Assembly (NCBI GenBank): GCA_010909165.1
Contig: VJWM01000193.1
Span: 310,001 to 374,000 of the forward strand
Source: Anthoceros angustus
Lineage: Eukaryota > Plantae > Anthocerotophyta
DNA length: 64,000 nt
Direction of reading: 5' to 3'
Below the pieces are notes generated by a model. It ran no database searches. It was not told the DNA's origin and was given only the letters and a program-made list of their open reading frames with translations. This document shows positions 6,767-64,000 of this stretch, piece after piece. Both the position numbers and the translations under genes were made by a program. Each line of letters starts with the position of its first letter. The stretch's first letter is position 1.

Positions 6767-6777
6767 GAGAAGGGGAG
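6767..6777 (+). promoter_or_regulatory. Polypurine tract of the Gypsy element
   Basis: GAGAAGGGGAG between the end of integrase and the start of LTR copy 2. Confidence 0.65.
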
Positions 6778-7980
6778 ACGGACTTGGTTAGAAATTAGGT
6801 AGGTTTTGTTTTTTGGGAGCAAGGATAAAATGAGGCGGAAAAGGGGAAATAAGCACGTTAATCGCACGGACGGGAGTATACTCGGACTGAGGAGTGAGCG
6901 ACTCAGGGCCTAATGGCGACAAGGTAACGCAGATAAGTCCTGACCGAGGACCGACCTGTAAGAAGGCCGGGTCCGTGGAGACCGGACTCAGGGAAGACCT
7001 GACCCAGAGGTCCGGACCCCGAGTCGAGACAGGTCCCGAGGTCCAAACTCGGGAGTGGGGAGAGCCACCAACACCAGCCAGCAGATCTAGGCCCTTGAGG
7101 GCCCGCCAGGGGGCCCGCCAGAGAGATAAGAGGGAGGACGAGGAAGACTTAGTGGTGATCGCCTTGTCGCCGCCGCCCGGTGGCGCAGCCTCGGCTGCAC
7201 TGGAAGAGGAAGGGGTCCGCGATCATCCGATTGCGCCACAATGAGTATTTTCACACGTGCCAAGAAGGAATCGTGGGGCTATCCCACCCCACCACCGACG
7301 GCGATAGGGCGAATAGGGAGGATAGTAGGCGCACTGTTAGGGCACACCGAAATGGCCCTCACCGTAATAGAGGTGTAATAAAGGCCGACCTTCAAGAGTA
7401 TAAGAGGGCTAAGGTCTCAATAAATCATCTTCTTGGTGTTGATGCGCTGCTCTGCACCTTTGTGTGTCTTCAGCTAACGTGAGTCTCGAGTCACCGAGCA
7501 AATGCATACTCCGGAGATTGACTGTGGTCCCGTGACGACCTAACGTGTTGTGGTGTGTGGAAGGGGTGACCCGTGCCAGAGTCACACTCAAAGACCGAAT
7601 GGATCCGGAACGGCGAGCCTGAGGAACTCGGAGGGCGGCAGAGCCCGGACGGAGAGGCCCGCTGAACGACGGAGGAGGTCCGATGTAACAAGGCCTTTCC
7701 CTAAGACAAGGAGTGTAGCGTGAGTGGAGAGAGGAAAGGACCGAAGTGTGAGCGACGAACGTGAACGATACGCGAATCGGTCCCTAAACGCTTGGCCATA
7801 CCGGCCCAGACGGTGAACGCTATAGTAGTTAGCGAGCAAAAGTGCGAGGCCGAACGAGCGCAAAGTGAGGTAAGAATCACCAAAACGCTAAACGGAGCCT
7901 ATCATTCCTTTGGGAACGGACTTCTTCCTACAACGACACGGATTGTGCGGTTTACCGCTATCGCCGAAAGTCGCGCGACA
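6778..7980 (+). repeat. Gypsy LTR copy 2 (3' LTR, but followed by a PBS)
   Basis: Homologous to 201-1370 (first bases eroded). Ends GTCGCGCGACA, then TTTTGGCGCC. Confidence 0.85.
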
Positions 7981-8210
7981 TTTTGGCGCCGCTGCGGGAA
8001 TGAAACTGTCACAGGATGCGGGAGGACGTGAGGTAGTTAAGAAGAATTAAGAGAGTCGGACGCCAGATCGCTGTAGCGCCCAGCGCAGTAACGTGAGAGA
8101 CGACGAGCTCGAGGCGTAATCAACGAACCGCAGGCGCGGGTGGAATTGTCGATCGTGAGGAGGAAGTGCCCCTGCAGGCGGCAGAGGAGCGGTTCTCACC
8201 GCCGCGACGA

Positions 8211-8559
8211 ATTGCTCGCTGCAGCCCATCACCGTTATGGCTTTACATTTGAGCAGGTCATTGTTGTCTTTATGGCCCCGTCTCGTACATAGCAAGAGGT
8301 CGCTTGGTTGATGATTTGTATCACTTAACTTGGTCAGCAGAACTGTAAGCATTTGTTACCCCATCAGGTCCGAGGCTAACCCGTGTATGCTAGGCTCATA
8401 TAAACAGGAGAAGTTGAATCTAATGTCGCTTCTAGACCTGCTTTAGGAAAAGCTCTTTGTTTCAAGACCCACTGTCTGCCGCCTTGTGTTATGTAAAACA
8501 AAAGGAACTTCCTTCAAGAATAAACAAGCACAATGAGCACAAAGTGTGTTAGAACTTGT
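8211..8559 (+). mobile_element. Duplicated Copia fragment (also 10036-10402 and 11887-12251)
   Basis: GHCCLYDSPVSVHA..RGRLVDDLY..LWHARLGHIN motifs. Overlaps in sequence with 1-200 and ends in CTTGT. Confidence 0.85.
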
Positions 8560-9791
8560 TGTGGATCACTGACTTCGGGGTTAGAAATTAGGTAGGGTTT
8601 TGTTTTTGTGTGGGAGCCAAGGATAAAATGAGGCGAAAAGGGGGAAATAAGCATTTAGCACCGGACGGCACTGGAGTATACTCCGACTCGGAGTGAGGAG
8701 CGCACTCCAGGCCTACGATGGCGCATAAGGTAATCTAGATAAGTCCGACCCCGAGGACCGGACTCAGAAGAAGGCCGGGTCCAGAGACCTGGACCTCAGA
8801 GGGAAGACCGGACCTAGAGGTCCTGACCGAGTCGAGACAGGTCCCGAGGTCCAAACTCGGGAGTGGGGAGAGCCACCACCACCACCCAGCAGATCCAAAT
8901 TGAGGCCCACCGCGCAGGGCCCGCCAGAGAGATAAGAGGGGAGGACGAGGAAGACTTAGTGGTGATCGCTGTCGCCGCCACGGTGCAGCCCGGCTGACCC
9001 CTGGAAGAGGAAGGGGTCACCGTGATCATCCGATTGCGCGCCAGCAATGACAGTGGCTCTACTTTGGGCCGTGCCAAGAAGGAATCAGGGCTATCCCACC
9101 CCACCACCGACGAGAAGTGAATAGGGAGGATAGTAGGCGGTTAGGCACACCGAAATGGCCTCACCGTAATAGAGGTGTAATAAAGGCGTCGACCTTCGGC
9201 GTAGTATAAGAGGGCCAAGGCCATCAATAAATCATCTTCTCTTGGTGTTGATGCCCTGCGCACCTTGTGTGTCTTCTGCTAACGTGAGTCCCGAACAAAG
9301 GTGCAGTAAGCCCGGGAGATTGATCGTGGTCCCGTGACGACCCAACGTGTTGTGGTGTGTGTGGAAGGGTGATCGTGTGCTCGTCTAGAGCTGACTCAAA
9401 GACCGAACGGACTGAACGCGCGAGCCGAGGAACTCCGGAGGGCGGCAGAGCCCGGACGGAGAGGCCCGGCTGAACGACGGAGGAGGTCCGGCTATAACCC
9501 GCGGCCTTTCCCTAAGACCGATGAGTGTAGCGTGAGTGGAGAGAGGAAAGGACCTGAAGTGTGAGTGATTTAATGTGAACGAGCACGGACGGGTCCCTAA
9601 ACGCTTGGCCATACCGGCCCGTGACGGTGAACGCTATAGTAGTTAGGCGATGTGTGCTTGAGGCCGAACGAGCGCAGTGAGGTAAGAATCACCAAACGCG
9701 TAAACGGAGCCTATCATTCCTTTGGGAACGGACTTCTTCCTACAACGACACGGATTGTGCGCGCCTACCGCCATCACGAAAGTCGCGCACA
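8560..9791 (+). repeat. Gypsy LTR copy 3
   Basis: TGTGG...GTCGCGCACA, followed by a PBS. Confidence 0.85.
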
Positions 9792-10402
9792 TTTTGGCGC
9801 CTGTCGGGAATGAAATCGTCACAGCCGTGATGCGTGGAGGACGTGAGGTAGTTAAGAAGAATTGCTAAGAGAGTCGGACGTTGGATCGCCAGAGCGCCCA
9901 GCGCAGTAACGTGAGAGACGACGAGCTCGAGGCGAGATCAACGAACCGCAGGCGCGTGGAATTGTCGGATCGCGTGAGGAGGAAGCAGCCCGAGGTGTGG
10001 CGAAGAGGAGCGGTTCTCACCGCCTACCGCGACGAATTGCTGCCTGCGCCCACTCACCTGGTCGCTATGGCTTTACATTTGAGTGGTCATTGTTGTCTTT
10101 ATGACTCGCCCGTATCCGTACATGCATAGCAAGAGGTCGCTTGGTTGATGATTTGTATCACTAACTTGGCCGCAACTGTAAGCATTTGTTACCCCATCGT
10201 GTCCGAGGCTAACCTGCGCATGCTAGGCTTGGGCATATAAACAGGAGAAGTTGAATCTAATGTCGCTTTCTAGACCTGCTTTAGGAAAAAGCTTCCTCTT
10301 TGCTTTCAAGCATCTACCGTCTGCCGCCTTGTGTTATGTCGAAACAAAAGGAACTTCCTTCAAGAATAAACAAGCACAATGAGCACAAAGTGTAGAACTT
10401 GT

Positions 10403-11638
10403 TGTGGACTACGGACTTCCAGGGGTTAGAAATTAGGTAGGGTTTTGTTTTTTGTGGGAGCCAAGGATAAAATGAGGCGAAAAAGGGGAAATAAGCAGTT
10501 GCACCCTGACTCAAGACTGGAGTATACTCCGGACTCGAGTGAGGAGCGCACTTAGGCCTACGATGGCGGCCATAAGGCAATCTAGATAAGTCCGGACCCC
10601 GAGGACCTGACTCAGAAGAAGGCCGGGTCCAGAGACCTGGACCCAGAGGGAAGACCGGACCTAGAGGTCCTGACTCGAGTCGAGACAGTCCCGAGGTCCA
10701 AACTCGGGAGTGGGGAGAGCCACCAACACCACCAAGATCCATTTTGGAGGGCCCACCGCAGGGCCCGCCAGAGAGATAAGAGGGGAGGACGAGGAAGACT
10801 TAGTGGTGATCGCTGTCGTGCCGCCACCGGCATGCAGCCCCGAGACCGAAGAGGAAGGGGTCTCACCGCGTGATCATCCGATTGGGTGCTACCGCACGAT
10901 GCTTTGGGGCCGCCGGTGCCAAGAAGGAATCGAGGGCCATCCCACACCGACGGCGATAGGCGGAATAGGGAGGATAGTAGGCGGTTAGGCACACCGAAAT
11001 GGCCTCACCGTAATAGAGGTGTAATAAAGGCCGACCTTGGCGTAGTATAAGAGGGCTAAGGCCGCCTCGAATAAATCATCTTCTCTTGGTGTTGATGCTG
11101 CCTGCGCACCTTTGTGTGTCTTCTTGCTAACGTGAGTCCGAGTCACCGAAAGGTACGACAGCCCGGGAGATTGATCGTGGTCCCGTGACGACCTAACGTG
11201 TTGTGGTGTGTGTGGAAGGGTGACTGTGACCCGTGTTTCAGAGCCGCCACCAAAGACCGAACGGACTGAACGCGCGAGCCGAGGAACTCCGGAGGGCGGC
11301 AGAGCCCGGACGGAGAGGCCCGGCTGAACGACGAGGAGGTCCGGCTATAACCCGCGCAAGGCCTTTCCCTAAGATCGATGAGTGTAGCGTGAGTGGAGAG
11401 AGGAAAGGACCGAAGTGTGAGTGACGAATGTGAACGATACGGACGCGAACGGGTCTAAACGCTTGGCCATACCGGCCCATTTGGGTGAACGCTATGAGTA
11501 GTTAGGCGAGTGAGTAACGAGCGCAGTGAGGTAAGAATCACCAAACGCGCAAACGGAGCCTATCATTCCTTTGGGAACGGACTTCTTCCTACAACGACAC
11601 GGATTGTGCGCCTACCGCCATCACGAAAGTCGCGCACA
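10403..11638 (+). repeat. Gypsy LTR copy 4
   Basis: TGTGGACTACGG...GTCGCGCACA, followed by a PBS. Confidence 0.85.
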
Positions 11639-12251
11639 TTTTGGCGCCTGTCGGGAATGAAATCGCTCATTAGCCGCGTGATGCGTGGAGGACGTGAGGT
11701 AGTTAAGGAAGAATTGCTAAGAGCCTGACGCCAGATCGCCAGAGCGCTTCCAGCGCAGTAACGTGAGAGACGACGAGCTCGAGGCGTAGGTCAACGAACC
11801 GCAGTAAGTGTGGAATTGTCGGATCGTGAGGAGGAAGCAGCCGTGTGGCGTGAAGAGTGAGCTCGCCTCACCGCCTACCGCGACGAATTGCTTTCGCTCG
11901 TGCAGCCCACTCACCGGCTATGGCTTTACATTTGAGCAGGTCATTGTTGTCTTTAAGGACTCGCCCGTATCCGTACATGCATAGCAAGAGGTCGCTTGAT
12001 GATTTGTATGCCTTAACTTGGCATAACCAAGCATTTGTTACCCCATCGTGTCCGAGGCTAACCCGTGGCATGCTAGGCTTGGGCATATAACAGGAGAAGT
12101 TGAATCTAATGTCGCTTCTAGACCTGCTTTAGGAAAAGCTTCCCTCTTGTTTCAAGCATCTACCGTCTGCCGCCTTGTGTTATGTCGAAACAAAAGGAAC
12201 TTCCTTCAAGAATAAACAAGCACAATGAAAAGCACAAAGTGTAGAACTTGT

Positions 12252-13504
12252 TGTGGACTACGGACTTCGGGGTTAGAAATTAGGTAGGGTTTTGTTTTTG
12301 TGTGGGAGCCAAGGATAAAATGAGGCGAAAAGGGGGAAATAAGCACCTGCTAGCACCCGGACCAAGACTGAGTATACTCCGGACTCGAGTGAGGAGCGAG
12401 CCCACGGCATGGCGGCGGTAACGAGATAAGTCCGGACCCCGAGGACCGGACTCAGAAGAAGGCCGGGTCCAGAGACCTGGACCTCAGAGGGAAGACCTGA
12501 CCTAGAGGTCCTGACCGAGTCGAGACAGTGGTCCCGAGGTCCAAACTCGGGAGTGGGGAGAGCCACCACCACCACCCCAGATCCAGCCTTTGAGGCCACC
12601 GCAGGGCCCGCCAGAGAGATAAGAGGGGAGGACGAGGAAGACTTAGTGGTGATCGCTGTCGTCCATGCAGCCCCCATGCACCCTGGAAGAGGAAGGGGTC
12701 ACCGCGTGATCATCCGATTGCGCGCCAGGCCGATGTGGCTCTCTACTTTGGGCCGTGCCAAGAAGGAATCAGGGCTATCCCACCCCACCACCGACGGCGA
12801 GAAGGAATAGGGAGGATAGTAGGCGGTTAGGCACACGAGGCGGCCTCGTAATAGAGGTGTAATAAAGGCGTCGACCTTCGGCGTAGTATAAGAGGGCCAA
12901 GGCCCGAATAAATCATCTTCTCTTGGTGTTGATGCCGCCTGCGCACCTTTGTGTGTCTTCTTGCTAACGTGAGTCCCGAGTCAATGAAAGCAGTAATGGC
13001 GCTCCCGGGAGATTGATCGTGGTCCCGTGACGACCCAACGTGTTGTGGTGTGTGTGTGTGGAAGGGTGACTGTGACCCGGCCGTCGAGCCGACTCAAAGA
13101 CCGAACGGATCGAACGCGCGAGCCGAGGAACTCCGGAGGGCGCAGAGCCCGGACGGAGAGGCCCGGCGAACGACGAGGAGGTCCGGCTATGTAACCCGCA
13201 AGGCCTTTCCCTAAGACCGATGAGTGTAGCGTGAGTGGAGAGAGGAAAGGACCTGAAGTGTGAGTGACGAATGTGAACGATACGGACGCGAACGGTCCCT
13301 AAACGCTTGGCCATACCGGCCCGTGACGTGAACGCTATAGTAGTTAGGCGAGCAAAAGCGCTGAGGCCGAACGAGCGCAAAGTGAGGTAAGAATCACCTG
13401 AAACGCGGCAAACGGAGCCTATCATTCCCTTGAGAACGGACTTCTTCCTACAACGACACGGGATTGTGCGCGCCCGGCTGGCCATCAGCGAAAGTCGCGC
13501 CACA
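12252..13504 (+). repeat. Gypsy LTR copy 5 (terminal, followed by the TSD)
   Basis: TGTGGACTACGG...GTCGCGCCACA, then CTTGT (13505-13509) and Copia integrase. No PBS. Confidence 0.9.
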
Positions 13505-29360: not shown

Positions 29361-32300
29361 TTAGAGTACATGGTGTTCACTTTTCTCGGCATCCTCCTTG
29401 TGCCCAACCAAAAAACTGTGCACTAGCCCATCCATGTCTGTCCACCAGCTCTGGCCTGGCTGCTTCCATGCCTCGATTCCTCTTCTCCTTGCCTGCATCT
29501 CCAGGGCCTCCTCCCACATCTGGGCACCTGCATATATGCTTGACATGGCCACATATGCGCCAGCATCTTTCTTGTCCATGCTCACTGCTTGATAAAAAGC
29601 ATGGTGTCCCACCTCGACATTGCTCCACTTTCGACAAGCACTCAATAAAGTGTGCCACAATGCAGCATCAGGCAGTACAGGCATTGTCTTTATCACAGAA
29701 AGAGCCTCATCCAGTTTGCCTGCACGACCTAGGAGGTCCACCATGCATGTGTAGTGCTCCACCGTGGGCAATGTGCCACAGTGTTTACTCATTGCCTCAA
29801 AGTATTCTCGTCCCTTGTTCACCAGACCTGCATGACTGCATACTTTTAGAACACTGAGGAACGTGACGCCGGTTGGTTGTACGCCATCCTCTTTCATTCT
29901 GTGAAGCAGGTCAAACACCACTTCACTATTGCCCTGGCAGGTGTAGCCTGCAATCAGGGCATTCCAAGCAACGACGTCTCTTTTGGGCAATGCCTCAAAT
30001 ACCTGCAGTGCATCAGCTGTGCTACCCACCTTTGCATACATGTTCATCAAACTGACGGCTACAAACTCATCTGCCTCAAGCCCATGTTTCACAATCTGCG
30101 CATGAAGCTGTCTTCCCAGATTAAAAGCTGCTACATTTGCACATGCCTGCAGGAGGCAGACAAAAGTTGCAGAATCGGGTGCAACGATGCATTCTTCTTG
30201 CATATCTTTGTAAAGAGAAAGTGCTTCCTGTCCCATACCCTGCTGGGAGTATGCTGCTATCAACGTGGTCCATGTCACAACATTCTTTTCACCAAGGCCG
30301 TCAAACATGCCATGAGCGTCCTTTAAGCTGCCACACTTTGCATACATGTTAACCAAAGCGTTGGCTACAACCACATCAGCTTCAAGTCCAGATTCCCTGA
30401 TTTGCCCATGAATCTGTTTCCCCTTCTCCAAAGCCAGGGTGCCCACCCCTGCACAAGCTTGAAGAAGGCACACAAATGTAACAGAGTCGGGTGCAAAGAT
30501 GCCTTCTTCTTGCATATGTCCGTACAGAAGGAGGGCTGCCTGCCCCATGCCCTGCTGGGAATATCCTCCCATGATGGCATTCCATGTGACCACATTTTTC
30601 TGACCAAGTCCATCAAAGACGACCTGAGCATCAACTAAGCTGCCACAATTCACATACATGTTGACCAAACTGTTGGCTATGAACGAATCAGCCTGAAGAC
30701 CTCGTTTTCCAATTTGTGCATGCAGATGCCTGCCATACTCCAAACCCTGGTTGCCCATACTAGCACATGCCTGCAAGAGGCACGCAAATGTTACGGAATC
30801 AGGTGCAAGAATGTCTTCTTTCTGCATATCCCTGTACAGGTGAAGGGCTTCCTGCCACATACCCTTCTGGGAGTATGCCGCTATTATGGAATTCCACGTC
30901 ACCACATTTTTATGATGAAGCAGGTCAAAGACATGCTGAGCATCCGATATGCTGCCACACTTTGCGTACATGTTCACCAAACTGTTGGCGACAAACTCAT
31001 CAGCTTGAAGACCTCGTTCTGCAATCTGGGCATGAAGCTGCCTCCCACTTTCAAACGCTGGGACACCCACACTTGCACATGCCTGGAGGAGGCCCACAAA
31101 TGTCACAGAATTCGGTGCAGTATCGCCTTCAAGTTGTTGATAAATAAGAGTGTAAAGATGATGAAGGGCTTCCCGATCCATGCCCTGCTGGGAATATCCT
31201 GCAATTAGAACAGTCCATGTGGCCACATCTTTTTTCAGAAAGCTGTCAAACACTCCTTGCGCGTCTTCCAAGCTGCCACACTTGGCATACATGTTCACCA
31301 AACTATTGGCTACAAGCACATCAGCCTCCAGCCCTAGTTCTCCAATCTGTGCATGAAGCTGCTTCCCCTTGTCTAGAGCCGGAGCGCCCACACTTGCACA
31401 TGCTTGCAGGAGGCACACAAATGTCACAGAATTGGGTGTAGCCATGCCTTCTTCCTGCATGGCACTGTAAAGACGAAGGGCTTCCTTCCCCATTCCCTGC
31501 TGGGAATATCCTGCCATAAGAGCAGTCCACGTCACCACAGTTTTCTTATCAAGTCCATCAAACACGAGCTGAGCATCCCGTAGGCTCCCACATTTGGCAT
31601 ACATGTTTACCAGACTGTTGGCTACAAACACGTTACCCTGAAGCCCTCGTGCTTCAATCTGTGCATGGAGCTGCTTCGCCTTCTTCAGAGCTGGGATGCC
31701 CACACACGCGCATGCCTGCAGGAGGCACACAAATGTCACAGAATCAGGTTCAGCAATAGCTTCTCCTTGTAGTTGCATGGTATTGTAAAGGCTAAGGGCT
31801 TCCTGACCCATTCCCTGCTGGGAATATCCTGCTATGATGGCATTCCATGTCACCACATCTTTTCGAGGAAGGCCGATGAACAGTGCTTGAGCGTCTTCCA
31901 ACCTGCCACACTTGGAATACATGTCCACCAAGGAATTAAAAACAAACATCTCGGGCTCAGGCTCAAGCCTAGCGGCCAACACATCAGCATGCACCTGCTG
32001 CCCAGTTTTCACGTCTCCTGTCCTTGCACAAGCCTGAAGTGCTGCTACAAACACATGGCCATCTGGCTCCACACTTGACGTACGCATCCTATGATAGAGT
32101 TGTATGGCCTGGCCAGCTTGTCCATGCTGCACATAAGCAGACATTATGGCAGACCAGGTAAAGGCATCTGGTTTGGGGATGACGGTGAACACATCCATCG
32201 CCTCGTGCATGCAGGCATGCGAAGCATACATCCGCAGAACCTGATTGCACAGGAAGGTGTCCGACCCGCATCCCGTCTTCACGATAAGAGCATGGACGCG

Positions 32301-50742: not shown

Positions 50743-50761
50743 CCAATTTCTGAGTTTCACG
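50743..50761 (+). promoter_or_regulatory. ER-stress response element ERSE-I (CCAAT-N10-CACG) upstream of SEC61A copy A
   Basis: CCAAT ttctgagttt CACG, exact plant consensus, ~125 bp upstream of the ATG. Confidence 0.65.
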
Positions 50762-50883
50762 CATGCTCGGGGCCGGCGATAGGGTTTCTTTCTTATAGAC
50801 CGACCCAGCATTCAATCTCACAGGAAAGGGGCCTGACTCTTCATCGCCAGCGGACCGAGCAGTAGGGCGATCCGACAGTCAAG

Positions 50884-53153
50884 ATGCCGGGGGGAGGGTT
50901 TCGCGTGTTGCATCTGGTAAGGCCCTTCCTCTCCGTGCTGCCGGAGGTGCAGACGGCAGAGCGGAAGGTCCCCTTCAGGGAGAAGGTGATGTACACTGTG
51001 GTGTCGCTCTTCATCTTCTTGGTCTGCAGTCAGCTGCCGCTCTATGGGATTCACACGGCCACGGGCTCAGATCCCTTCGTCTGGCTGCGAGTCATCCTGG
51101 CTTCCAACAGGGGAACTGTGATGGAGCTCGGTATCACGCCAATTGTCACCTCGGGGCTGGTTATGCAGCTCCTCGCCGGCTCCAAGATCATTGAAGTGGA
51201 CAACAACGTCAAGGAGGACCGGGCTCTTCTGTAAGTCAGCTCAATTTGTAGATCTCCGAGTTAGGAGCCTCTAAATGTGACGTGTCTGGTCCTGTCAGGT
51301 TAGAGCGGCTCTAGATCTGCAGTTTGTGGCTCTGGAGGGAGGGTTTTACTGCCTGATTTGCTCTGGACGGAGACACCGCTTCCCTTCTCTTCTTACTGCT
51401 TTGATTCCCTCTTTTAGTCCTCAGTACCACGAGTTTGAGGTCTCGGATGTAGTGAATCGGTAGAAAGCTTCTCTAATTCCTCGGATCCAGTAATCGTTTG
51501 CTGGTTGGGAGCCACATGCGCTAGATCTTGAGCCTAGGGTCGCTGCGCTTTGATCCGTCCTGCATGTTCGTGTTCTGTGGCAGAAATGGTGCCCAGAAGC
51601 TCTTGGGAGTGATGATCACTATTGGAGAAGCCGTAGCGTATGTTCTATCTGGGATGTACGGGGATGTCCGAGATCTTGGAGCTGGTAATGCCATTCTCAT
51701 TATTGCGCAGCTATTTTTCGCTGGCATCATCGTTATCTGTTTGGACGAGCTCCTGCAGAAGGGATATGGTCTTGGTTCTGGGATCTCCCTGTTTATCGCC
51801 ACCAACATCTGGTACGAATTCGGCTGTTGCTTGCAGAATGATGTGCAGCTCACCTTGTCGCTTCACACTTTTCTTGCTGTGCCTCTGCATTACGCGCTGT
51901 TGCCTTTTTTTCAAGGGTTCTTATCATAGCTTGCTGTTTTGCCAGTGAAAACATTATCTGGAAGGCGTTCAGTCCTACCACCGTCAATAGTGGTCGTGGT
52001 GCTGAGTTTGAAGGAGCAGTTATTGCTCTTTTCCATCTCTTGATTACCAGAGCGAACAAAGTGCAGGCGCTGAAAGAGGCGTTCTACAGGCAGAACCTTC
52101 CCAATGTTACCAATCTGCTGGCGACAGTCATCGTCTTTCTTATCGTTATTTACTTCCAGGGTTTTCGTGTTGTGCTTCCTGTGCGATCGAAAAGTGCCCG
52201 TGGACAACAGGGCTCGTATCCTATTAAGCTATTCTACACCTCCAATATGCCCATCATCCTGCAAAGTGCCCTCGTCTCCAATCTGTACTTCATCTCCCAG
52301 GTGCGTGCACACCCCTGCTTTCTGTATGGGCTTGGGAGTCTTAGCCACTGTCTTGGAGCTTCATAGCTGATGGTTTTTGCATTCAGTGACACTCCTCGCC
52401 TCGTGATGTGTTGCAGCTGTTATATAAGAAGTACGGAAGCAACTTTATTGTTCAGCTCCTTGGGAAGTGGAAGGAGACTGAGTACTCATCCAGTGGTCAG
52501 CTTTTCCCTGTAGGCGGCCTTGTGTATTACATCACACCTCCAGCCAGGTAAAGGCTCGTATGAGTGTCCTTGCATGCTGAACAGGTTTTGTGCATCTGAG
52601 GTTTTGTGTCGCTTTATGGGCCTTTGAACATGTTTCTGTTGGTGTTGCAGCTTGAAGGATATTGCGACCAACCCTTTCCATGCGTTGTTCTATCTGACAT
52701 TTATGCTGACAGCGTGCGCCTTGTTTTCAAAGACTTGGATTGAAGTCTCTGGCTCATCAGCTCGTGATGTTGCGAAGCAACTGAAGGTTACCTTCCTCGT
52801 CTGCAATCCCAGCCCTTGTGACTGCGTTTTTATGCCAAATAGTCGCTGCTTATGGTCATGTATGTGGACCGGAAATCTCCAGAAACTGATTTCTTACTGC
52901 TTGCTTTGATCAGGAGCAACAAATGGTGATGCCTGGACACCGGGAATCCAATCTTCAAAAGGAGCTGAATCGGTACATCCCAACTGCAGCCGCATTCGGT
53001 GGAATGTGTATTGGTGCTCTGACCGTTGTGGCGGACTTTATGGGCGCTGTGGGATCTGGAACAGGCATTTTGCTTGCTGTGACCATCATATACCAGTATT
53101 TTGAGACTTTCGATAAGGAAAGAGCAACCGAGCTCGGATTTTTTGGCTTCTAG
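50884..53153 (+). CDS. SEC61A: Protein transport protein Sec61 alpha, copy A (6 exons; exon 1 50884-51230)
   Basis: [100 protein letters not shown]. Confidence 0.97.
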
Positions 53154-54084
53154 GGTTGAGAGGTCACAAGATGAGTTCATGCTGGCGCTCAGTTGGAAGG
53201 TGCAGTTGAACTAGGTTCAAGCAGGATCTGCTGCTGTAACCTTATATCTACCAATACTTGGAAACTTTTTGACAGGGGGGGTCAGGTATTTTGGCTTCGA
53301 AGGCACAAGGGGGAGCCGGGTACGTGCACGCAAAGTTAGTCGGAAGGTAGCTTTGCAGTTGAACACCAGTGCAGGCTGGGTCCTTGGCTGGTTGTGAAGT
53401 GGCAACAGGTGTTGATCAGCTTTAGGCCCAACCAATCCGGAAGCCGGAAGTGGAAACCGCGAGTGACTCATGTTATGTCGGTTTGTTTCTGACGTTGGAA
53501 TGAGCTGCGGCAGATCTTGCTACATGTGTGAGTGAACTCAACGGTGGGCCTTTCTCCTCCTTTGCTGGGTATCATTCTTTTAGTTTTTCGTCCATCAGTT
53601 GCTCTCTTGAGCCGGGACCAGTTAGTGTTGGAAATTAGAGGATCTTATAGAGACGAGTAGTGAGGGCCTGTTGCCCATACCATCTCCAGTTGTCCAGAAT
53701 TTTGGGCGTCTGGCGGTTCAGTCACTTGCGTAGAGTCACTCGCCACATTCTATACCGCCTTCATGTGGGTTATGTATTTTGTCGGGCTCGGAGGTCTCCG
53801 AGCTTTGTCTTGTGGAAATACTTATACAGTCCTCCTACCTCCTTGTAAGCAAGCTTATGGGCCCAGACATAAACTCATAAACTCCTACCTCCACTCCCTG
53901 CATAAGCAAGCTTATGGAATCCTATGGGCCCAAGGTTGCGCATAAGCCGTGGAGCTTGAATCTCTTGACCAGCCAAGGGCCAATGCTGTGTACAGCAAGT
54001 TGTGCATATAAGGCATTTGCAAGACACGAAGGCACTGAAGTAAGAAAACACAAAACTAGAACCCGATGCGCAGTGTGAAGGGTG

Positions 54085-54154
54085 ATGTTATCGATCCACT
54101 GTATGTTATCGATCCACTGTATGTTATCGATCCACTGTATGTTATCGATCCCTG
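54085..54154 (+). repeat. 18-bp tandem repeat x4 (ATGTTATCGATCCACTGT)
   Basis: Directly visible, upstream of the SPPL pseudogene. Confidence 0.9.
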
Positions 54155-54410
54155 TTCGCCTTCTCGTGGCTTTCTTCCCTTAGAAAACGCGCGAGCCAGC
54201 GGCCTGCTTCCTGCAATGGGAGCCACTTGGACTGCTGTTCTGGAAAGATTCTGCACATTTGACGTTGCGCAGGAACGCAATTGTCCAATCCATGGGGTTT
54301 ACACGCTAAAACTGAGTTGGGAGGGCTCGGCATCCATCCGATTACTGCAAGTACGTGTTGGCTCGTTACTGGGATGATTCCCTGACCTTTAGGCGTTTTC
54401 GAAGTAGACC

Positions 54411-56357
54411 ATGGGGATTTGCTCTCCTGGCCGGCAGCTTCATGGCGGTTCTGCAACGGGGCTCTTGTAGGTTATGGTCTTACTGACTGCCTCGCTGCTG
54501 CTGCACGCCACGGCCGGGGACTTGTCGGATTATGACGATCCGCCCTCCTTGGTTGCGAAATGATCTTGTCCTGGGAGGTGCTTGCATGCATGCATGCGGA
54601 TTCCTGGGTGCATTGCCGGGTGGCAGTGCACTATATGTTTGTTGGTCCTTGGTTAGGTGACAACAGGCGTTGTGGTTTCACCAAGGAGTTGGAGCCCACT
54701 GGAAAGGCTCGACTCGGTGCAAGGCTGGATGGCTTATTTGTGCAGGTTGCCGAGTGGGAACATGTTGTGGGATGCTAGGCGAAGCTTGGGAATTCGGTTA
54801 ACGGGAAACAGGGGAACCAGTATGTTGGAGTCAGTGCATAGTTCGTTAGTCAGATTCCAAGCTTCTTTGTGGCCAAGCTGTCCAAAACCTGGCGTGCATC
54901 TTCCAGTTCATTTTACGTACTTGTCCACCAGGCAGGTGCCCACCATCACGTTCTCCAGCAGTCCTCTTTCGACAATCAGCGAGTGCAGCTGCAGCGAGTT
55001 GCCCTTCCGTAATGCCCCAGTGCTTGCAGAGGCCTTTTGAAGGCAAGCAAAAGTAACATGGCTACCCAAAATCAGCCCCTCCTGCTCCATTTGTCCATAC
55101 ACAATAAGTGCCTCGTGTCCCAGCAGGAAGAAGATGCTCATAGCATAGTGCACCTCTCTTCGTCGCAGATCCTGGGGAATGGTGCACAAATATTACAACC
55201 AAGGCAAGGAAGCGTGAGAAGAAGTGTACCCGATGCTGTAGTGCTTGCCTTGGAGGTGAGAATTGACGGGGGGTTTTGTTTCTAGGAGATCGCATTGTAC
55301 GTTCACAAAAAGGCTTGAATCGCACAGCGGGCTGGAGCAAGAGCTTGGTTTGTTGTTAATGACCAATAAGGTGGTGACTGTAATTGCTGTGTTGGTTATT
55401 AGTGTGAATGCATTCCTACTTATCACCAACGACTTGTATTGCTTTTGTGTGGGATGTTAGGATGTCTGTGCAAGACGACGTGTGAGGATAACGATACCGG
55501 TGTCGATATCACCATCCCTGTGGCGATGTTGCCCTAAGATGGTGGAAGCCGTCCGAAAGCCCATTTTGTGGCAGGGAGCAGGGGGTATGTGCAGTATTTC
55601 TTCTGTTGTACAACATGTTGGATTTTTTTAGTTTTAGTTGCTGCGGCAGTGTTATATTCCTCCTCTTTACCCTGTGTTTACAGTGAGAGTTCTTCTTTTC
55701 TCCCCAACTCAGCCAACCCAACTTTTGGATGATGCGGAATGTTTCTTGTGCTTGATGGCAGTTGTTACTACCCAGAGGTCTTCTTCTCGGTCTCCATGGT
55801 GGAGTGAAAAAGAGTCAAAGAGTGAAGTTGTGCTGATGGGCGTTTGGAATGTCAGCTTATATCAGAGAGCCGATCTGCTTGACTTAGCTGATAGGAATAT
55901 GCGTGCATAGTGACCACCACCGACCGGAGCTGCTCTCATCTGAATTCTGCTCTCCTTATGACATCCCAATCTCTGAAAACTACCGAGAGCAGACATCTCA
56001 CTTAGTCACCGTAGAGGAGTCCTGGGTTTCCCCTGAGGAGTTTCTAGTGCTCCATTTTGATTATTGCCGTCTAATGCGTTCAGCAGGTTCTTAATGCAGA
56101 ACTTTCAAAAGTGTGTGGTGTCACTTTGGTCAGGGTAACTAATCTGGTTTTCTGGGTTTTCCACCTGGTGGTTTTCCACATGGTTCATACCGACGTCCGA
56201 GGACAAAATATGATATTCCGTGTACTGCGTTTAGCAGGTTCTCAATGCAGGGGTTTCAAGCGTGTGTGGTGTCACTTTTGGTCAGGGTAACTGATTTGGT
56301 TTTCTGGGTGTTGGTGGGTTTCCACATGGTTCATACCGACGTCCAAGGACAGAATAT
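54411..56357 (+). pseudogene. SPPL pseudogene (copy A), 3'-truncated
   Basis: Colinear with 60395-62100. Stop at codon 20 (54468-54470), AAG>TAG in exon 2, a ~270-bp foreign insertion, frameshifts, and a ~150-bp local duplication at its end (56076-56357). Lacks the YD/GxGD/PAL exons. Confidence 0.88.
54846..55115 (-). pseudogene. Antisense PLS-PPR gene fragment inserted into SPPL pseudogene exon 2
   Basis: GHEALIVYGQMEQEG..VTFACLQKASASTGALRKG..LHSLIVERGLLENVMVGTCLVDKYVK..ELEDARQVLDSL is a P-L-S triplet. The segment is absent from the intact SPPL exon at 60770-60928. Confidence 0.85.
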
Positions 56358-56645
56358 ATTAAGTATTTATACAGAGGTTATAGAAGTATATCGGTTAATT
56401 AGTTCCATGGTCTATATATGTACCTAGTGTGTAGTTATGTTGACAAGTCAGTCAGCTATATGCTAGAACACTGGATCTACATATGGTTGTTGCAAAGATA
56501 TTGGACCCATTTGTTGGGCTCTGTGCATGCCAAGGGCCAGCTGTAGGGTTTTGTTCTTAGACAAGTCGGACATTCAGTCTTAGAAGAAAAGGGACACAGT
56601 CTCTATCCCAGCAGGACTAAGCAGCAGGGCCATCTGAAAGATAAA

Positions 56646-58805
56646 ATGCCAGGGGGAGGTTTTCGTGTGTTGCATTTGGTGAGGCCCTTCCTCTCCGTGC
56701 TGCCGGAGGTGCAGGCAGCCCAGAGAAAGGTACCCTTCAGGGAGAAGGTGGTGTACACAGCAGTGTCGCTGTTCATATTCTTGGTCTGCAGTCAGCTCCC
56801 ACTCTATGGGATCCACACGCCCATGGGCTTAGATCCCTTGTATTGGTTGCGAGCCATGATGGCTTCCACCAGAGGAACTGTGATGGAGCTCGGTATCACG
56901 CCAATTGTCACGTCGGGGCTGATCATGCAGCTTCTGACCGGCTCAAACATCATTGAAGTGAACAACAAGGTCAAGGAGGACCGGAATCTCCTGTAAGTCA
57001 CACCTCAGATTGTAGACCTCTAAGTCCGGGGATTCAAAATGAGTGTTATTTTTGGGTGCTGTAGGTCAGAGTGGCTCTTTACCTGCACTGTGGCGTGAGG
57101 GAGGGTGTCTCTGGCTTGATTTGCTCCTAACTCTGTCCTTAGGTTCTATTGCCACAGTTCTCAGGTCTTGGATGCTGTCTGTCATGGCTTTGCTTTGATC
57201 CACCCTGATGGTGCTCTTGTGTGGCAGAAATGGTGCTCAGAAGCTCTTGGGAGTGATGATCACTATTGGACAAGCTGTACTGTATGTCCTATCAGGGGCG
57301 TATGGAGATCTTGGAGCTGGTAACGCCATTCTCGTTGTTGTGCAGCTCACTGCTGCTGGCATCATCATGGTCTGTTTGGACGAGCTTCTTCAAAAGGGAT
57401 ATGGTTTTGGTTCTGGAATCTCCCTGTTCACTGCCACAAACATTTGGTACGGATTCGGCTGTTGCGTGCCAAATGTTATGCAGCTCACCTGTTGCCTCTA
57501 TGCTTTATCTTTCATCTGGTGATATTGGTTGCTGCGCCTCTCTGTACCATGAGCTGTCTCCACGGTTCTTATCATTAGGTTTGCTGTATTGCCAGTGAAA
57601 ACGTTTTCTGGAAGGCGTTCAGTCCCCGCACTATCAACAGTGGTCGTGGCCCTCAGTTCGAAGGAGCAGCTGTTGCCCTTCTCCATGCGGCCTTCTTCAG
57701 GATGGGATCGATACAGGCACTGAAACAGGCCTTCTTCCGGCAGGAGCTTGACAATGCCACTAATCTTCTGGCGACAGTCGTAGTCTTTCTTCTTGTTGTC
57801 TACCTTCAGGGTTTTCGGGTTTTGCTTCCAGTACAACACAAAAAGACTCGTGGACAAAAGGGAAAGTATGCTATTAAGCTTTTCTACACCTCCAGTATGC
57901 CCATCATGCTACAAAGTGCTCTTGTCTCCAATCTGTACTTCATGTCCCAGGTGCATGCACATCCTCACTATTTGTATGGAGTTCCAGGGGGTGTTAGTAA
58001 ACTACCGGTGTTTGAGCTGCAACGCCGGTAGTGTGTGCATTCAGTAATACTTGTCTCCTGGCCATGTCTTACAGTTGTTACATAACAAATTTGGAGGCAA
58101 CTTTTTCGTCCAGCTTCTTGGGAAGTGGAAGGCGGATGAGCAGTCATTCGGTGGTCAGCTTATCCCCGTTGGGGGGATTGTGTATTACATTACACCTCCA
58201 ACCAGGTAGAAGCTCGTGCGAGTGCCTCTCCAAGAGTCCCTCTCCAAGAAGTGTTTTTGCATGTGAGAGCTTCAGTCGTGCTATGGGCCTCTAAATGTGT
58301 TAATTGTCCTTATTCGGTGTTGCAGCTTGGGGGATATCGCGTCCAACCCTGTCCATGCGATGTTCTATTTGACATTTGTGCTGACAGCATGCACCTTGTT
58401 CTCGAAGATATGGACTGGAGTCTCTGGCACATCAGCTCGTGATGTGGCGAAGCAATTGAAGGTAAGCTTTAGCAGTCAGCAATCCCAGCCCTTGTGACTT
58501 CAAATGGCCATGTCTGTGAATCGGAAATTCCCGGACACTGATTTCGTCATGCTTGGTGTGATTAGGAGGAACAAATGGTGATTCCTGGACACCGGGAATG
58601 CAACCTTGAAAAGGAGCTGAATCGCTACATCCCAACTGCAGCTGCGTTAGGTGGAATGTGTATCGGTGCTCTGACTGTTCTGGCCGACTTGATTGGCGCT
58701 TTTGGGTCTGGAACAGGAATCTTGCTCGCTGTCTCCACTATCTTCCAGTATTTTGAGATCTTCGAGAAGGAAAAAGTAAAAGCGCTCGGAGCTTTTGGGC
58801 TGTAA
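56646..58805 (+). CDS. SEC61A-like: Divergent Sec61 alpha paralog, copy B (same 6-exon structure; reading frame intact, 3-aa deletion)
   Basis: All six exons splice in frame by my reading. Exon 1 is 347 nt as in copy A. Introns and UTRs are recognisably homologous to copy A. Many amino-acid replacements. Confidence 0.9.
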
Positions 58806-60394
58806 GGTTGAGAGGTGACAGGATGACCTCACTCTGCGCTCAGTTAGAAGGTGGCGTATAACTAGGTTCAGGCAGCATCTGCTGCAGAAGCCTTCATGTA
58901 CCAACATTTGTAAGTTTGGCTTCCTTCTACTGCATTAGAAGAAGCCGGGTAGGTTCGCGCAGAGCTAGATAGAAGGTGGTTCTGCAGCTGAATTGGTGAC
59001 CAGTGCACGCTGGGCTGGGTGCCCGGCTGGTTCTGAGATGGCAACAGGGCTTCTTTACCTGTTTGGCTGTGCTTTAACCTGCTGGTCGTGATTTACATGT
59101 ACGTAGGTCTTTGGGCTTGGAGATGTATTGGAAATCTTTTGTACAAAAGAGCTGAGACTTATGTTCCCAAAATGTCTCTCACCTACAGCACCTAGTGAGT
59201 CGAAGCTTTGGATCTGGGCACTCACAAAGTAGTAGTCTACCAGGGTGCAAAGACATCGATACTTAAGTAGGTACCTATTTCCTTCTGGGAATCCGGGGTT
59301 TAAGTAGCTGAACACATATGTTACAGGTAGTCTCTTCTGAGTCTTTGCAATTGCAAGATCAAACATCTCCCAAGACGGAATGGCCACTTGTGCGATGTAT
59401 GCTTCTTTCCCACACCCTTGTCTGCACGATCTCAAACCAGCGTTCGATATCGGATCGCTCATCAAACCCCTCGAATCACAGGATAAGAGGCGTCAATGAT
59501 TTCTGGTCCCAACAAGAGGAGATCGGAACCCCAAAGGTTTCTGCGTGTACGAGTTCGCAATATGGGTAAGCAACTCTACGCTGCTCACGGATACAGATTT
59601 GCGAGTGTCACCGACGGAGAGGATCGAGTGCCACTTCAGGATCGGATCGCGCGCCATCTTCGAGGTCCTAGACTCGAGGATTCTGAGAAGTCCTTGGATT
59701 GTGCATTGAAAATCTATGAAAATCAGGGTTCTGATTCTTCGCACTCGCTAGACGAATTTCCTTCATCGGACTTGGTACTTGACCACTTGTACCATGTTGA
59801 AGTTGAGGGGAGGAAGACACACCGGCTACATATCGGCCTCAATTTGAAGAAGAAAAATGAAGTGAAGCGTGAGGGGTGAGGGGAGGAAGGCACACCGGCT
59901 ACATATCGGGAAGCACGTCGTCTCCAGGGACAGCACATCGCCTTCACACGACGGATTCAAATCGGCTTCACATGATGGATGCAAATTGGCGTGACATGAC
60001 GGATGCAAATCGGCTTCACATGAGGCAGCAAGGGCCTGAAGTCGCCGACCAAAGCGTGAACCCAAAATTCCATTCGGAGCGAACCCAAAACTCAAGATAA
60101 TTTATTTCGTCTTCTTTACATACACTCTCCCTTCGCGTGGCACTCTCCCCTCACTCAGAAACTGCGCGAGCCCAGTGGTCTCCTTGCTGTGTCGGAGCTT
60201 GCTGTGGGAGCCCCTTGGACTGCTGTTCGGGCAGGATTTCGCACACTATTCGCGCGCAGGACGCGCAATCGCCCATGGGATTTCCATGCTAAACCTGATT
60301 TCAAAAGGAGCTGAGCGTCCATCAGAGGACTGCAAATAAGTGGGGGTCCATTGTTGGGATGATCCCCTGACCTCTGACATTTCCGAAGCCGACC

Positions 60395-63300
60395 ATGGGG
60401 ATCTGCTCTTCTGGCCGGCAGCCTCATGGCGGTCCTGCACCGGTGCTCGTGTGGCTGATGATCTTGCTGACTGCCGCCCTGCTGCTGCTGCAAGTCGCTG
60501 CTCGGGACATATCTGACGATGACGATTCGCCCTCGGTTCCTGGTTGCGACAATGCTTTTGTGCTGGTAGGTGCATGCATGCAGGTTCGGGGATGCATCAC
60601 CCGGTGGCTGTGCAGCAGACGCATACGTTTGGTGGTTCTTGGTTAGGTTACAGCATGCGTTGTGGTTTCGTCTAAGTGGTTGGGGCACATTGGAGATGGG
60701 AAGGCTCCAATTTGGAGTGCAAGGCTCCTTCTTTCAGTGGCTGAGTGGGAGCATGTTGTGGGATGATAGGTGAAAGTCCGGAATTGGGTTAACGGCAAAG
60801 AGGGGAACGAGTATGTGGGAGTCAGTGCAAAGTTCGGTGCCAAGATACAGAGCAAAGAAGAAGATGCTCACAGTGCACCTCTCTTCATCGCAGATCCTAG
60901 GGACTGTTGCGCAAATATCACGACCAAGGCAAGGAAGCGTTAGAACTGTACGCGCTGCCGTAGTGCTTGCCTTGGGAGTGAGAATTGACCGGTGATTTGG
61001 TCTCCAGGAAATCCCATTTGTTGTTATGGCTGAGAGGGGGGATTGTACGTTCACAAAAAAGGCTCGAATTGCACAGCAGGCTGGTGCAAGAGCTTTGTTA
61101 GTTGTTAATGACCAACAAGGTGAGGATCCTCATCGGTGTGCTGGTTATTATTGGGATGGGCACTCTTTCCTTATCACTGACAACTGGTATGTGCTCTCTG
61201 TGTGGGATGTTCACAGGGCTCTATAAGATGGTGTGTGAGGAGAATGATACCTTTGTCGATATCACCATCCCTGTGGTGATGTTGCCCAAAGATGCTGGAA
61301 CCAGTCTGGAAGCTAACGTTGTAGCAGGGAAGAGGGGTATGTGAAGATTCTGCCTCTGTAGCACACCATGCTGGAGCTTCCTTGTCTTAGTTGCGGGGGC
61401 AGTAGCTAATCCGTTTGCCCTGTGTTTCTAGTGAGAGTGCTCCTTTTCTCCCCAACTCGGCCGCTTGTGGATGTTGCGGAAGTTTTCTTGTGGCTGATGG
61501 CAGTCGGTACCATTTTGGGGGCTTCTTTCTGGTCTGCATGGAGTGCAAAAGAGGCATCAATCCAACACTACAGAAGAGTGAAGGTGTGCTGATCAGCATG
61601 TGGAATGTGATCTTGCATCAGAGAGACAATCTGCTTGATCTACCTGTCGTCCAAATATGCTTTACATGACAACCAATGAGCAGGGCTGCCCTCTTCTGAA
61701 CTTTGCTATCCTCATTTTTCATGTCTGCTGATCAGGATGTTGTCGACCCCTGTGTGGATGAAAGCCGCGAGGAGAAAAACGTGGTTGACATCAATGTTTA
61801 TTCAGCAGTGCTATTTCTCGTTCTGGCATCAGCATTTTTGGTGTTGCTCTACTTTCTCATGTCGAAGTGGTTCCTTATGATTCTGGTGGTCGTCTTCTGT
61901 ATTGGTGGAGTTGAGGTAATTTCCGCCCCTCAGTCTCTGAAAGGCTACCGATAGCAGACTTCCATCGTAGAGTTCGGTTCTCCTGCAAGGAGTTTCTAGT
62001 GCTCTATTTTCTGTCTTGACATCTAATGCGTTTAGCATGCTCTTATTGCAGGGCTTGCAAACCTGTGTGGTGTCACTTCTGTCAAGGTAAATGATCTGCT
62101 TCCATGGATTTTGGTGACTTATGGGAAGTGGGTTACGGTTTATCTATTGCTGAAATCCCTGCAAAACAGAGGTGCCTTCTGCTTTGACCTTTACAGGTGG
62201 TTTACATGTACCCATGGTTTCTTGCTTGCTCCCCCAACCCTGCAGGTTTGCGCCCAGTTTAGCTTCCATTTATGTAAACGTACCCTTAATCGGGGACATA
62301 TCAGTGCTCTCGCTTCTTGTTGCTCCTTTCTGCATCACATTCGGAGTGTTGTGGGCAGTATTTCGGCATCTCTCCTTTGCCTGGATCGCTCAGGATATTC
62401 TTGTAAGTTCTCATTTGGACGTCCTCTGTCTCACCATTTCCTGCCGGCTCCCTGTTGTCATAACTGACAAATCTTATTGCACTGTGTTTGTTCTCCAGGG
62501 CATTTCATTGATTCTGACAGTGCTCCAAATTGTGCAACTTCCTAACATCAAGGTGTGCTGTTGTAATTACTCGCCTCCATAGACACCTAGGTGTGTAGAA
62601 TAGGCAACAGCCCGTGTTCTCTGTACTGCTTTTGTAACCATGGGCTATTGGACACAGGTTTCCACAGTGCTATTGAGTTGTGCATTCTTCTACGACATTT
62701 TCTGGGTGTTCATATCACCTTATTTCTTCCACGAGAGTGTGATGATTGTGGTAAGTAAATCGCTGATGTCTGTGCCCTTCTCTTACCGCGTCTCCTGCCG
62801 GTTAGTCCGATCCAAGGATTCTCATCTAGTGCCCATGCCAGGTTGCTCGAGGTGACAGAAGCGGAGGAGATGGTATTCCGATGCTTCTCAAGGTTCCCAG
62901 ACTGTATGACCCATGGGGTGGTTACAGCATTATAGGTTTTGGAGACATTCTTTTGCCAGGCCTGCTGGTCTCCTTCTGTCTCAGGTAAGTCACCAGCTAT
63001 GAGCTTGTTGCCAGTGATCGCAGAAGAGGCTGGATCATAATCATAACCCTTGAGGTATCGCTGTTGCCATTTCGCAGGTATGACTGGGCAGCCAAGAAGA
63101 GCCTCTCGAAAGGATACTTCTTGTGGGCAATCATGGGTTACGGTTTCGGTAGGTCTCTACACCAGCCTTGCTTGCGCTCAAAGCCCACCAGCCCGAAATC
63201 CCATTTCGGCATCTGGACTAATGAGTACTGTGATCTTGGATCCTCTCCAGGCCTCTTCCTGACTTACGTGGCACTTAACCTGATGGACGGCAACGGTCAA

Positions 63301-63563
63301 CCGGCGCTTCTGTACATCGTACCTTGCACACTCGGTAACAAACGCAACACCTCCCCACTTCCTAACGCCGTGTGCATCTCCATCTGTTCCCACCTATAGC
63401 TAACCGGCATTCCACGTGTATAACGTACCCCGCAGGAACTGTGCTCTTCCTGGCCTGGAGGAGGGGGGAGATGAACCTCCTGTGGAGCCAGGACGACGAA
63501 GACGTGAAAGGGGAAGTAGAACCACCTCACACGGCAGCAGTACCCGCAGTCGGTGTATCATAG
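60395..63563 (+). CDS. SPPL: Signal peptide peptidase-like aspartyl protease with PA domain (SPPL2/4-type; multi-exon), copy B
   Basis: Signal peptide, PA domain ([18 protein letters not shown]), catalytic FFYDIFWVF and [18 protein letters not shown] motif. Confidence 0.92.
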
Positions 63564-64000
63564 TTCACCCAGCACGTCACCCACCACGAGCTGACAATCG
63601 GGTACATAGACCCTCCTCCTGTTTTCTGCGGACGGGACTCCAGTACAGCGGCCCCGTCCATTCATTTCTGGACAGGCCTGTTCCCAACTTGGCAGCAGTA
63701 GCACCGGTTATGGGTGAGAGCCTCTCTTCTCTCACCCAAAACGGACACCCTTCGTACAAATTATTGGAGGAGTCCAGAAATCCGTCCCTCCACCTAGAAA
63801 GGAGGCCCAAGGACGGATAGCACGGGCAGGCCACACGCTACTTTCGCCTTCTCCTCCTTTTATTCACTAGTTGTCGGACTGGGTTGCATCAGACTTTATT
63901 CGCAGGTGAGTGCGCTTTATTCCAGAGGAGAAAGGGACGTGGGTCTGGATATCGGCACCCTAGAGCTCCGATGTCGGAACGGAATATTATTGGGTGCTGG

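Follow-up and report, generated by a model that had tools for sequence, protein, structure and literature searches.

Two Sec61-alpha genes lie in tandem on the forward strand of a 64,000-nucleotide stretch of Anthoceros angustus (Anthocerotophyta) DNA (NCBI GenBank assembly GCA_010909165.1, contig VJWM01000193.1, positions 310,001 to 374,000), which is referred to below as the window and in whose coordinates and on whose forward strand all features are given. The upstream gene, copy A (50884..53153), is a canonical Sec61-alpha of 478 amino acids, and the downstream gene, copy B (56646..58805), is a divergent paralogue of 475 amino acids. Sec61-alpha is among the slowest-evolving membrane proteins of eukaryotes, and copy A is still 93-94% identical to the moss and liverwort proteins after hundreds of millions of years. 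Copy B has changed at 24% of its residues, yet it is intact, spliced and conserved across species. We are moderately confident that it is a retained, lower-expressed auxiliary Sec61-alpha paralogue under purifying selection that is strongly relaxed but not absent.

The duplicated locus and its gene models

The DNA of the window is eukaryotic, its introns being short and of the GT-AG type. The gene model of copy A has six exons (50884-51230, 51584-51811, 51946-52300, 52417-52547, 52651-52786 and 52914-53153), and so has that of copy B (56646-56992, 57228-57446, 57596-57950, 58075-58205, 58326-58461 and 58566-58805), for which Pfam matches and a spliced contig are also available. Intron positions and phases are identical in the two copies and the splice sites are canonical; in copy B all introns are GT-AG, the ten splice sites are intact and no stop interrupts the frame. 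The Pfam domains Plug_translocon (PF10559, E=1.7e-15) and SecY (PF00344) were found on the B exons, five of the six being covered. Exons 1-3 of copy B can be aligned to the solved human Sec61A1 (residues 4-108, 113-187 and 189-306), and part of exon 5 to yeast Sec61p. The sole gap in the alignment of exons 1-3 is a 3-residue deletion in the loop between transmembrane helices (TM) 3 and 4. The same in-frame loss of three codons (VRD, at 57309..57310) is the only coding insertion or deletion (indel) of copy B relative to copy A. The two proteins are 76.6% identical, with a synonymous divergence (dS) of 0.425, a nonsynonymous divergence (dN) of 0.138 and thus a pairwise dN/dS (omega) of 0.33.

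When the window was compared with itself by blastn, 50761-53409 was found repeated at 56525-59048 with 75-79% identity. The first copy of this block (50761..53409) consists of the Sec61 gene together with ~120 bp upstream of it and ~250 bp of 3' untranslated region (UTR), so the promoter-proximal homology of copy B with copy A is only about 120 bp. Introns and UTRs of the two genes can be aligned at 72-85% identity. A second repeated stretch pairs 54159-55959 with 60130-61715 at 72-73% identity. The former (54159..55959) is a decayed partial copy, lying after copy A, of the 5' part of a PA-domain signal-peptide-peptidase-like (SPPL) gene; the latter belongs to a seemingly intact gene of this kind downstream of copy B. 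Judged from the two paired repeats, the duplication unit would therefore be roughly 5.8-6 kb long. The initial annotation, which was made from the DNA letters alone, had described copy B as an intact, locally duplicated paralogue, and the six in-frame exons, the shared intron positions, the homology of UTRs and introns and the tandem layout all bear this out.

The divergence is concentrated in copy B

The proteins were compared with 62 full-length green-lineage Sec61-alpha sequences, which were gathered by an exhaustive search with B exon 3 and by a word search from a full-length plant hit. The exon 3 search returned mostly fragments and chimeric models, and it led to a Nymphaea protein (P0129), a vertebrate-like protein (P0160), distant protists and an Eleusine protein (P0243). 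A word search with B exon 1 in the length range of 63-201 amino acids gave no fragment more than 81% identical, a result that is uninformative on full-length kin. Copy A is 93-94% identical to the Sphagnum, Riccia and Spirogloea proteins, while copy B is 74-76% identical to all of them.

Changes were polarised with 14 outgroups from bryophytes (moss, liverwort) and streptophyte algae. Among the 114 columns at which the two copies differ, 94 are derived in copy B, 6 are derived in copy A and 14 have changed in both (binomial p=2e-21). Copy B has thus accumulated 91 derived substitutions in addition to the 3-residue deletion. At the FVW site, the outgroup comparison makes the Val of copy A the derived state and the Tyr of copy B the ancestral one, the one point at which the initial annotation is corrected. 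The maximum-likelihood tree joins copies A and B as sister sequences (support 95/86); the branch of copy A measures 0.025 and that of copy B 0.38, the protein rate of copy B being about 15 times that of copy A. On the assumption of equal dS per branch, omega is 0.08 for copy A and 0.56 for copy B (bootstrap 0.42-0.74). In windows of 50 codons, omega lies between 0.22 and 0.46 throughout after codon 50 and never exceeds 1 in any window. Mutational decay through GC or methylation bias was also considered as a cause, and it was rejected, since neither GC content nor mutation spectrum has drifted.

Intactness against neutral decay

The non-coding alignments of the two copies contain 38 indel events per 905 aligned bp, from which ~30 events would be expected in the coding sequence of copy B; one was observed, and it is in frame. 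The neutral expectation for stops is ~7, against none observed, and when 171 substitutions were placed at random the frame stayed open in only 0.7% of trials (P(no stop) ~0.007). The decayed SPPL fragment, which stems from the same duplication event and has had the same time span, serves as an internal control for neutral decay: its PA-domain exon carries in-frame stops as well as deletions of 26 bp and 1 bp. Furthermore, sites conserved in 61 or all of the 62 green sequences hold fewer B-derived changes than their share of the columns would predict (30/91, against 52.5% of all columns; p=2e-4). The marks of a pseudogene are thus not seen in copy B, whose frame and ten splice sites are intact, whose omega has an upper bound of 0.74 and whose transcript is spliced. 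The initial annotation had argued against neutral decay, and this part of it is upheld by the open reading frame and splice sites kept against the flanking expectation, by an omega_B of 0.56 (0.42-0.74), which is below 1, by the sparing of conserved sites, and by the spliced transcript and the orthologues described below.

Transcripts and orthologues of copy B

In run X1, a 1617-nt contig matches copy B with 0 mismatches and joins exons 2-6, spliced exactly at introns 2-5; copy B is therefore transcribed and spliced. Because the contig matches without a mismatch, X1 probably comes from the same organism. The X1 contigs leave 56712-57240 uncovered, and the splicing of intron 1 is seen only in relatives. 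Spliced contigs 90-95% identical to copy B were found in runs X2, X6 and X11, which represent three other organisms. They carry the B-type plug codons (Y-W-L-R-A-M) and are therefore orthologues of copy B rather than of copy A, so that the duplication predates the splits between these organisms.

The orthologues differ from copy B in several ways. In the plug, they have F at position 62, T at 69 and S at 72 (human numbering). They have DPF rather than DPL, and show the A state at positions 36, 62, 98, 382, 439, 442 and 463 (B numbering). DPL, T95 and I438 (human numbering) are states private to the present species. The listed differences between copy B and its orthologues comprise 13 synonymous and 23 non-synonymous nucleotide changes, split about evenly between the lineages. 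This even split means that an omega near 0.5 has persisted after speciation, in place of a burst followed by constraint.

All runs are contigs, from whose depth expression levels are not readable. With that limit, a 43-nt unitig identical to the start of A exon 2 has a depth of 298, against 22.6 for the B contig, which is a tentative hint that copy B is the minor and copy A the major transcript.

Several further observations concern these transcripts. A 951-nt X1 contig, whose depth of 21 is similar to that of the B mRNA contig, starts 640 nt or more upstream of 56400 and enters B exon 1 without any splicing. The contigs of the relatives likewise reach far upstream, skipping 56446-56593. In the X6 contig (organism C), one nucleotide is missing at 58787, a site five codons ahead of the stop, and one of the two X11 contigs (organism D) has a 1-nt insertion at 58411 in exon 5; genuine lesions, another paralogue or errors of assembly could account for these 1-nt indels.

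Could copy B then be a gene on its way out, redundant and dispensable, which is still intact through short time or through weak selection against dominant-negative subunits, and which is transcribed but poorly translated or not translated at all? Such a fate would agree with a rate about 15 times that of copy A and an omega of about 0.56, with the many near-invariant sites that have been hit, and with a transcript depth seemingly below that of copy A. A leader that is perhaps long and rich in upstream ATGs, the ~120 bp of promoter-proximal sequence shared with copy A, and the 1-nt indels in the orthologue contigs at 58787 and 58411 (the latter in one of two X11 contigs) point the same way. However, the deficit of indels and stops described above, the same-age SPPL fragment riddled with stops, the upper bound of omega_B and the sparing of conserved sites argue against it, as do the ten intact splice sites and the B-type orthologues that are spliced and expressed in three other organisms. 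Consequently, we regard this explanation as improbable.

Substitutions in the plug, pore ring, lateral gate and loops

All of the substitutions from copy A to copy B that were listed initially were recovered at their codons in the alignment of the two copies, including IIW>VFW, YFQG>YLQG, FML>FVL, SGSS>SGTS, DFMG>DLIG and VTII>VSTI. The codons of the plug helix (human residues 60-74) lie at 56832..56876 and carry the B-derived changes F62L, V67A, I68M, L69M and N72T; the solved structures that best match this plug are those of fungal Sec61. According to the review literature, conservation of the plug is poor across homologues, and yeast tolerates substitutions in the ring (PMC8745461).

The yeast pore ring consists of V82/I86/I181/T185/M294/M450 (PMC8031780), and yeast Q129 corresponds to human Q127 (bioRxiv 10.1101/2022.08.11.503542). 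Alignment to the solved human Sec61A1, together with these papers, places three of the B residues at human Q127, I183 and I292, equivalent to yeast Q129, T185 and M294, as had been proposed. The Gln codon at 57271..57273 corresponds to human Q127 of the lateral-gate polar cluster; this position is Glu in copy A and in most green-lineage sequences, and Gln in 6 of the 62 green and 5 of 11 distant sequences. Consequently, the cluster T86/Q127/N300 is complete in copy B, whereas copy A has E at 127. The Thr codon at 57430..57432 occupies the ring site human I183 / yeast T185, which is Ile in all 62 green sequences. The Met codon at 57906..57908 occupies human I292 / yeast M294, which is Ile in 61/62 green sequences and Met in 5/11 distant ones. 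Copy B has all six residues of the pore ring, of which four (human I81, V85, I179 and L449) are retained, and the two that have changed, to Thr and Met, are those of the functional yeast ring.

Copy B keeps RGQ and GHRE in cytosolic loops 6 and 8, two motifs whose basic residues we take to be ribosome contacts, while 9 and 8 other residues of these loops, respectively, have changed. Three lysines have been gained in loop 6, and the key Arg residues of both loops are preserved.

Are these changes aimed at the gating elements? With approximate TM boundaries, B-derived change is not enriched in the plug (5/16, p=0.2), in the ring (2/6, p=0.3) or in the lateral-gate helices (12/83 changed, against 78/393 elsewhere). 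The initial annotation had spoken of a rewired plug, pore ring and lateral gate; that description is not sustained, given the lack of enrichment in these elements and an omega of 0.22-0.46 along the gene after codon 50. The highest density of change is found in lumenal loop 5 and in the cytosolic loops, which lie at a distance from the pocket formed by plug and gate.

This distribution bears on the idea of an arms race, in which copy B would be a decoy channel driven to diversify by natural inhibitors of Sec61, or by effectors of pathogens, with the plug/lateral-gate pocket as their binding site. All known inhibitors bind this pocket, and resistance mutations cluster there (bioRxiv 10.1101/2022.08.11.503542); the elevated omega in sister lineages and the repeated change at plug positions 69 and 72 would also fit. 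However, the pocket shows no enrichment of change, the densest change being in the loops just named. In addition, Q127 and N300 are polar prongs that strengthen inhibitor binding, and the loss of either gives resistance (bioRxiv 10.1101/2022.08.11.503542); copy B gains Q127 and keeps N300, which is the opposite. We therefore consider an arms race very improbable.

Yeast-like residues and background homoplasy

It had also been claimed that about ten of the changes move to the yeast residue and that this would be convergence. When short sub-ranges of copy B were compared with solved structures, fungal chains ranked first. The proposed yeast motifs were checked against the S. cerevisiae Sec61p chains 6n3q_A and 7kao_A, and the plug, FVL, SGTS and IFW were confirmed; YLQG was seen in two other fungal structures. 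Yeast states were verified directly at nine positions, from printed short-range alignments and papers: S. cerevisiae Sec61p has the B-derived states at human-numbered positions 62, 67 and 68 (plug), 127, 183, 192, 292, 368 and 385. For position 258 in the same numbering the match was verified in other fungal structures.

The matches are thus real, but they are of a kind seen throughout the family. For 63 of the 91 B-derived substitutions, the same state is present in one or more of 12 distant Sec61-alpha sequences. The number of matches to the 91 derived states ranges from 6 to 21 per distant sequence, with 15 in a fungal-like protein (P0166), 7 in the vertebrate one and 6-21 in protists. The divergent angiosperm paralogues (Arabidopsis, Capsella and Vicia villosa) share 9-12 of the B-derived states, including E127Q, and the derived states of other fast plant paralogues, Eleusine included, agree with those of distant lineages as often as in copy B or more often. 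No excess of yeast matches over those of other distant lineages or of fast paralogues was found. The yeast-like residues are therefore the usual states of fast-evolving Sec61 paralogues, an outcome that the initial annotation itself had named as speaking against convergence, and what remains of the claim is the matches themselves, as background homoplasy of the family. A horizontal origin from a fungus was considered as well, and it is ruled out by the introns, UTRs and tandem position common to copies A and B. More generally, matches of residues to a model organism have to be weighed against the level of homoplasy that is usual in the family.

These results have to be set against the possibility of neofunctionalisation, that is, that copy B is a specialised alternative translocon whose gating is altered by the Thr/Met ring, the fungal-type plug and the Gln in the polar cluster, and which serves a client subset or a particular condition, playing in a plant the part of yeast Ssh1 or that of a channel dependent on Sec62/63. 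The gene is intact, expressed and retained in several organisms; two ring residues have changed that are invariant in the 62 green sequences (61/62 at 292); the plug is nearest to fungal Sec61 among solved structures; and loop 6 has three added lysines, with the key Arg residues preserved there and in loop 8. Moreover, changes in the pore ring and plug are known to shift gating (bioRxiv 10.1101/2022.08.11.503542; PMC8745461). Nevertheless, plug, ring and gate show no enrichment of change, omega is uniformly 0.2-0.5 and above 1 in no 50-codon window, and it has stayed near 0.5 in copy B and its orthologues after speciation, with no burst followed by constraint. DPL, T95 and I438 are seen in the present species only, the yeast-like states are homoplasies of a generic kind, and copy B is far nearer to Sec61 than to Ssh1. 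A specialised translocon therefore seems unlikely to us.

A probable auxiliary subunit under relaxed selection

We thus prefer the reading of copy B as an auxiliary Sec61-alpha paralogue under relaxed selection, for which the following history may be proposed. A tandem duplication of ~5.8-6 kb would have copied the Sec61-alpha gene and the 5' part of the SPPL gene, of which the SPPL fragment subsequently decayed. Copy A would have kept the essential housekeeping role (omega about 0.08), and copy B, expressed at a lower level, would have come through one or more speciation events as an auxiliary subunit of the channel. Under this history, the channel core, comprising 4/6 ring residues, the T86/Q127/N300 cluster and the RGQ and GHRE loop motifs, would be kept in copy B, while elsewhere the protein would drift among the residues that Sec61-alpha tolerates. 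Because the repertoire of tolerated residues is small, many of its states would coincide with those of fungi, protists and divergent plant paralogues. The B protein is presumably made and would form a translocon; to judge from published mutagenesis, its less hydrophobic ring (I>T and I>M) and altered plug may somewhat loosen gating.

Several points weigh against this interpretation. The omega values of both copies depend on the assumed equality of dS per branch. The 30 B-derived changes at near-invariant green sites include the two ring residues as well as loops 6 and 8; lumenal loop 5 is enriched for change (16/47, p=0.01 uncorrected); and plug positions 69 and 72 have changed again independently in the orthologues. 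An omega of 0.56 with an intact open reading frame also fits strong constraint at some sites combined with positive selection at others, and retention across speciation argues for a selected role beyond plain redundancy. Finally, the stretch upstream of copy B that is crossed by the unspliced contig (55761-56645) contains 17 upstream ATGs; the contig represents either an extended leader, which would impede translation, or a transcript from the SPPL fragment that overlaps the gene or reads through into it.

A bolder interpretation would take copy B together with its orthologues as an alternative Sec61 channel of a bryophyte-grade plant, young and confined to one lineage, in which the less hydrophobic Thr/Met ring, the fungal-type plug and the more basic loop 6 give looser gating that suits a certain set of clients or a certain condition. 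Such a channel would be a plant analogue of yeast Ssh1 that arose independently, seen here at an early stage while diversifying pressure still acts on it. We regard this interpretation, taken as a whole, as doubtful.

Whichever holds, copy B amounts to a natural mutagenesis experiment, since so large a share of its residues has changed in a gene that is still intact, spliced and conserved across species, and it reveals channel positions that tolerate change, including two ring sites and the plug. If copy B serves clients of its own, it would represent a rare alternative translocon of plants; if it has none, it would be a clean case of long-lived relaxed selection on the duplicate of an essential gene.

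Other features of the window

The SPPL gene behind copy B extends over 60130..64000, reaching or passing the end of the window, and has Pfam matches to PA (61026-61223) and Peptidase_A22B (61703-61951 and 62172-62579). At the duplication junction (56060-56360), two ~125-bp direct copies lie just upstream of the boundary of A/B homology, each running from the start 'gcgttcagcaggttct.aatgcag' to the end 'catggttcataccgacgtcc.aggaca'; inside them, Tandem Repeats Finder reported only a short 15-bp repeat. At the start of the decayed SPPL fragment (54085-54155) lies an 18-bp unit repeated in tandem in 4 near-perfect copies. Elsewhere in the window, 1-13500 contains large internal repeats, with units of 1.4-5 kb recurring at 81-85% identity, and a tandem array with offsets of roughly 300-600 bp and 70-75% identity occupies 29921-31931.

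Comparison with known systems

Copy B belongs to the same family as the canonical plant Sec61-alpha proteins, such as those of Sphagnum (P0363), Riccia (P0355) and Klebsormidium (P0391), and has the same architecture, with SecY and plug domains. The difference lies in the distance, as these proteins are 93-94% identical to copy A and only 74-76% identical to copy B. Three Sec61-alpha genes are known in Arabidopsis, namely AT1G29310, AT2G34250 and AT1G78720 (PMC3610429).

With S. cerevisiae Sec61p, copy B shares the states given above, but its other four ring residues follow plants, and the matching states have no common origin, because copy B shares introns and UTRs with copy A.

The yeast Ssh1 protein, a Sec61 paralogue, forms an alternative translocon and serves clients of its own. 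Unlike copy B, it is ancient and very diverged; vertebrate SEC61A2, also unlike copy B, is highly conserved. What the genes for Ssh1p and SEC61A2 have in common with copy B is that each is a second Sec61-alpha-type gene beside the essential one, although plants are without an Ssh1 orthologue (PMC3610429). Matches of the B exons to Ssh1 (2ww9_A) have E=7e-23 and 3e-8, and those to Sec61 have 1e-35 to 1e-41. An Ssh1-type subunit was therefore rejected as an identity for copy B, which is far closer to Sec61 chains than to Ssh1 and is the sister of copy A.

Divergent Sec61-alpha paralogues also exist in other plants. To our knowledge, none of them has been characterised functionally. They include a Brassicaceae clade, with a 473-amino-acid 'SecY protein transport family protein' of A. 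thaliana (P0398) and its relatives in A. arenosa (P0402) and Capsella (P0403), the paralogues of Vicia villosa (P0415) and Tetracentron (P0399), and a pair in Eleusine coracana (P0243/P0300). The Eleusine paralogue (P0243, P0299 and P0300) is very divergent, has 460 amino acids, is encoded on the homeologous chromosomes 5A/5B and is 46-50% identical to canonical plant Sec61-alpha; it is seemingly uncharacterised. All of these arose by duplications separate from that of copy B, and none has I183T or I292M. The branch of copy B (0.38) compares with ~0.08 for the Brassicaceae clade and ~1.6-1.9 for the Eleusine pair. Like copy B, they are independent, lineage-specific and accelerated duplicates of Sec61-alpha.

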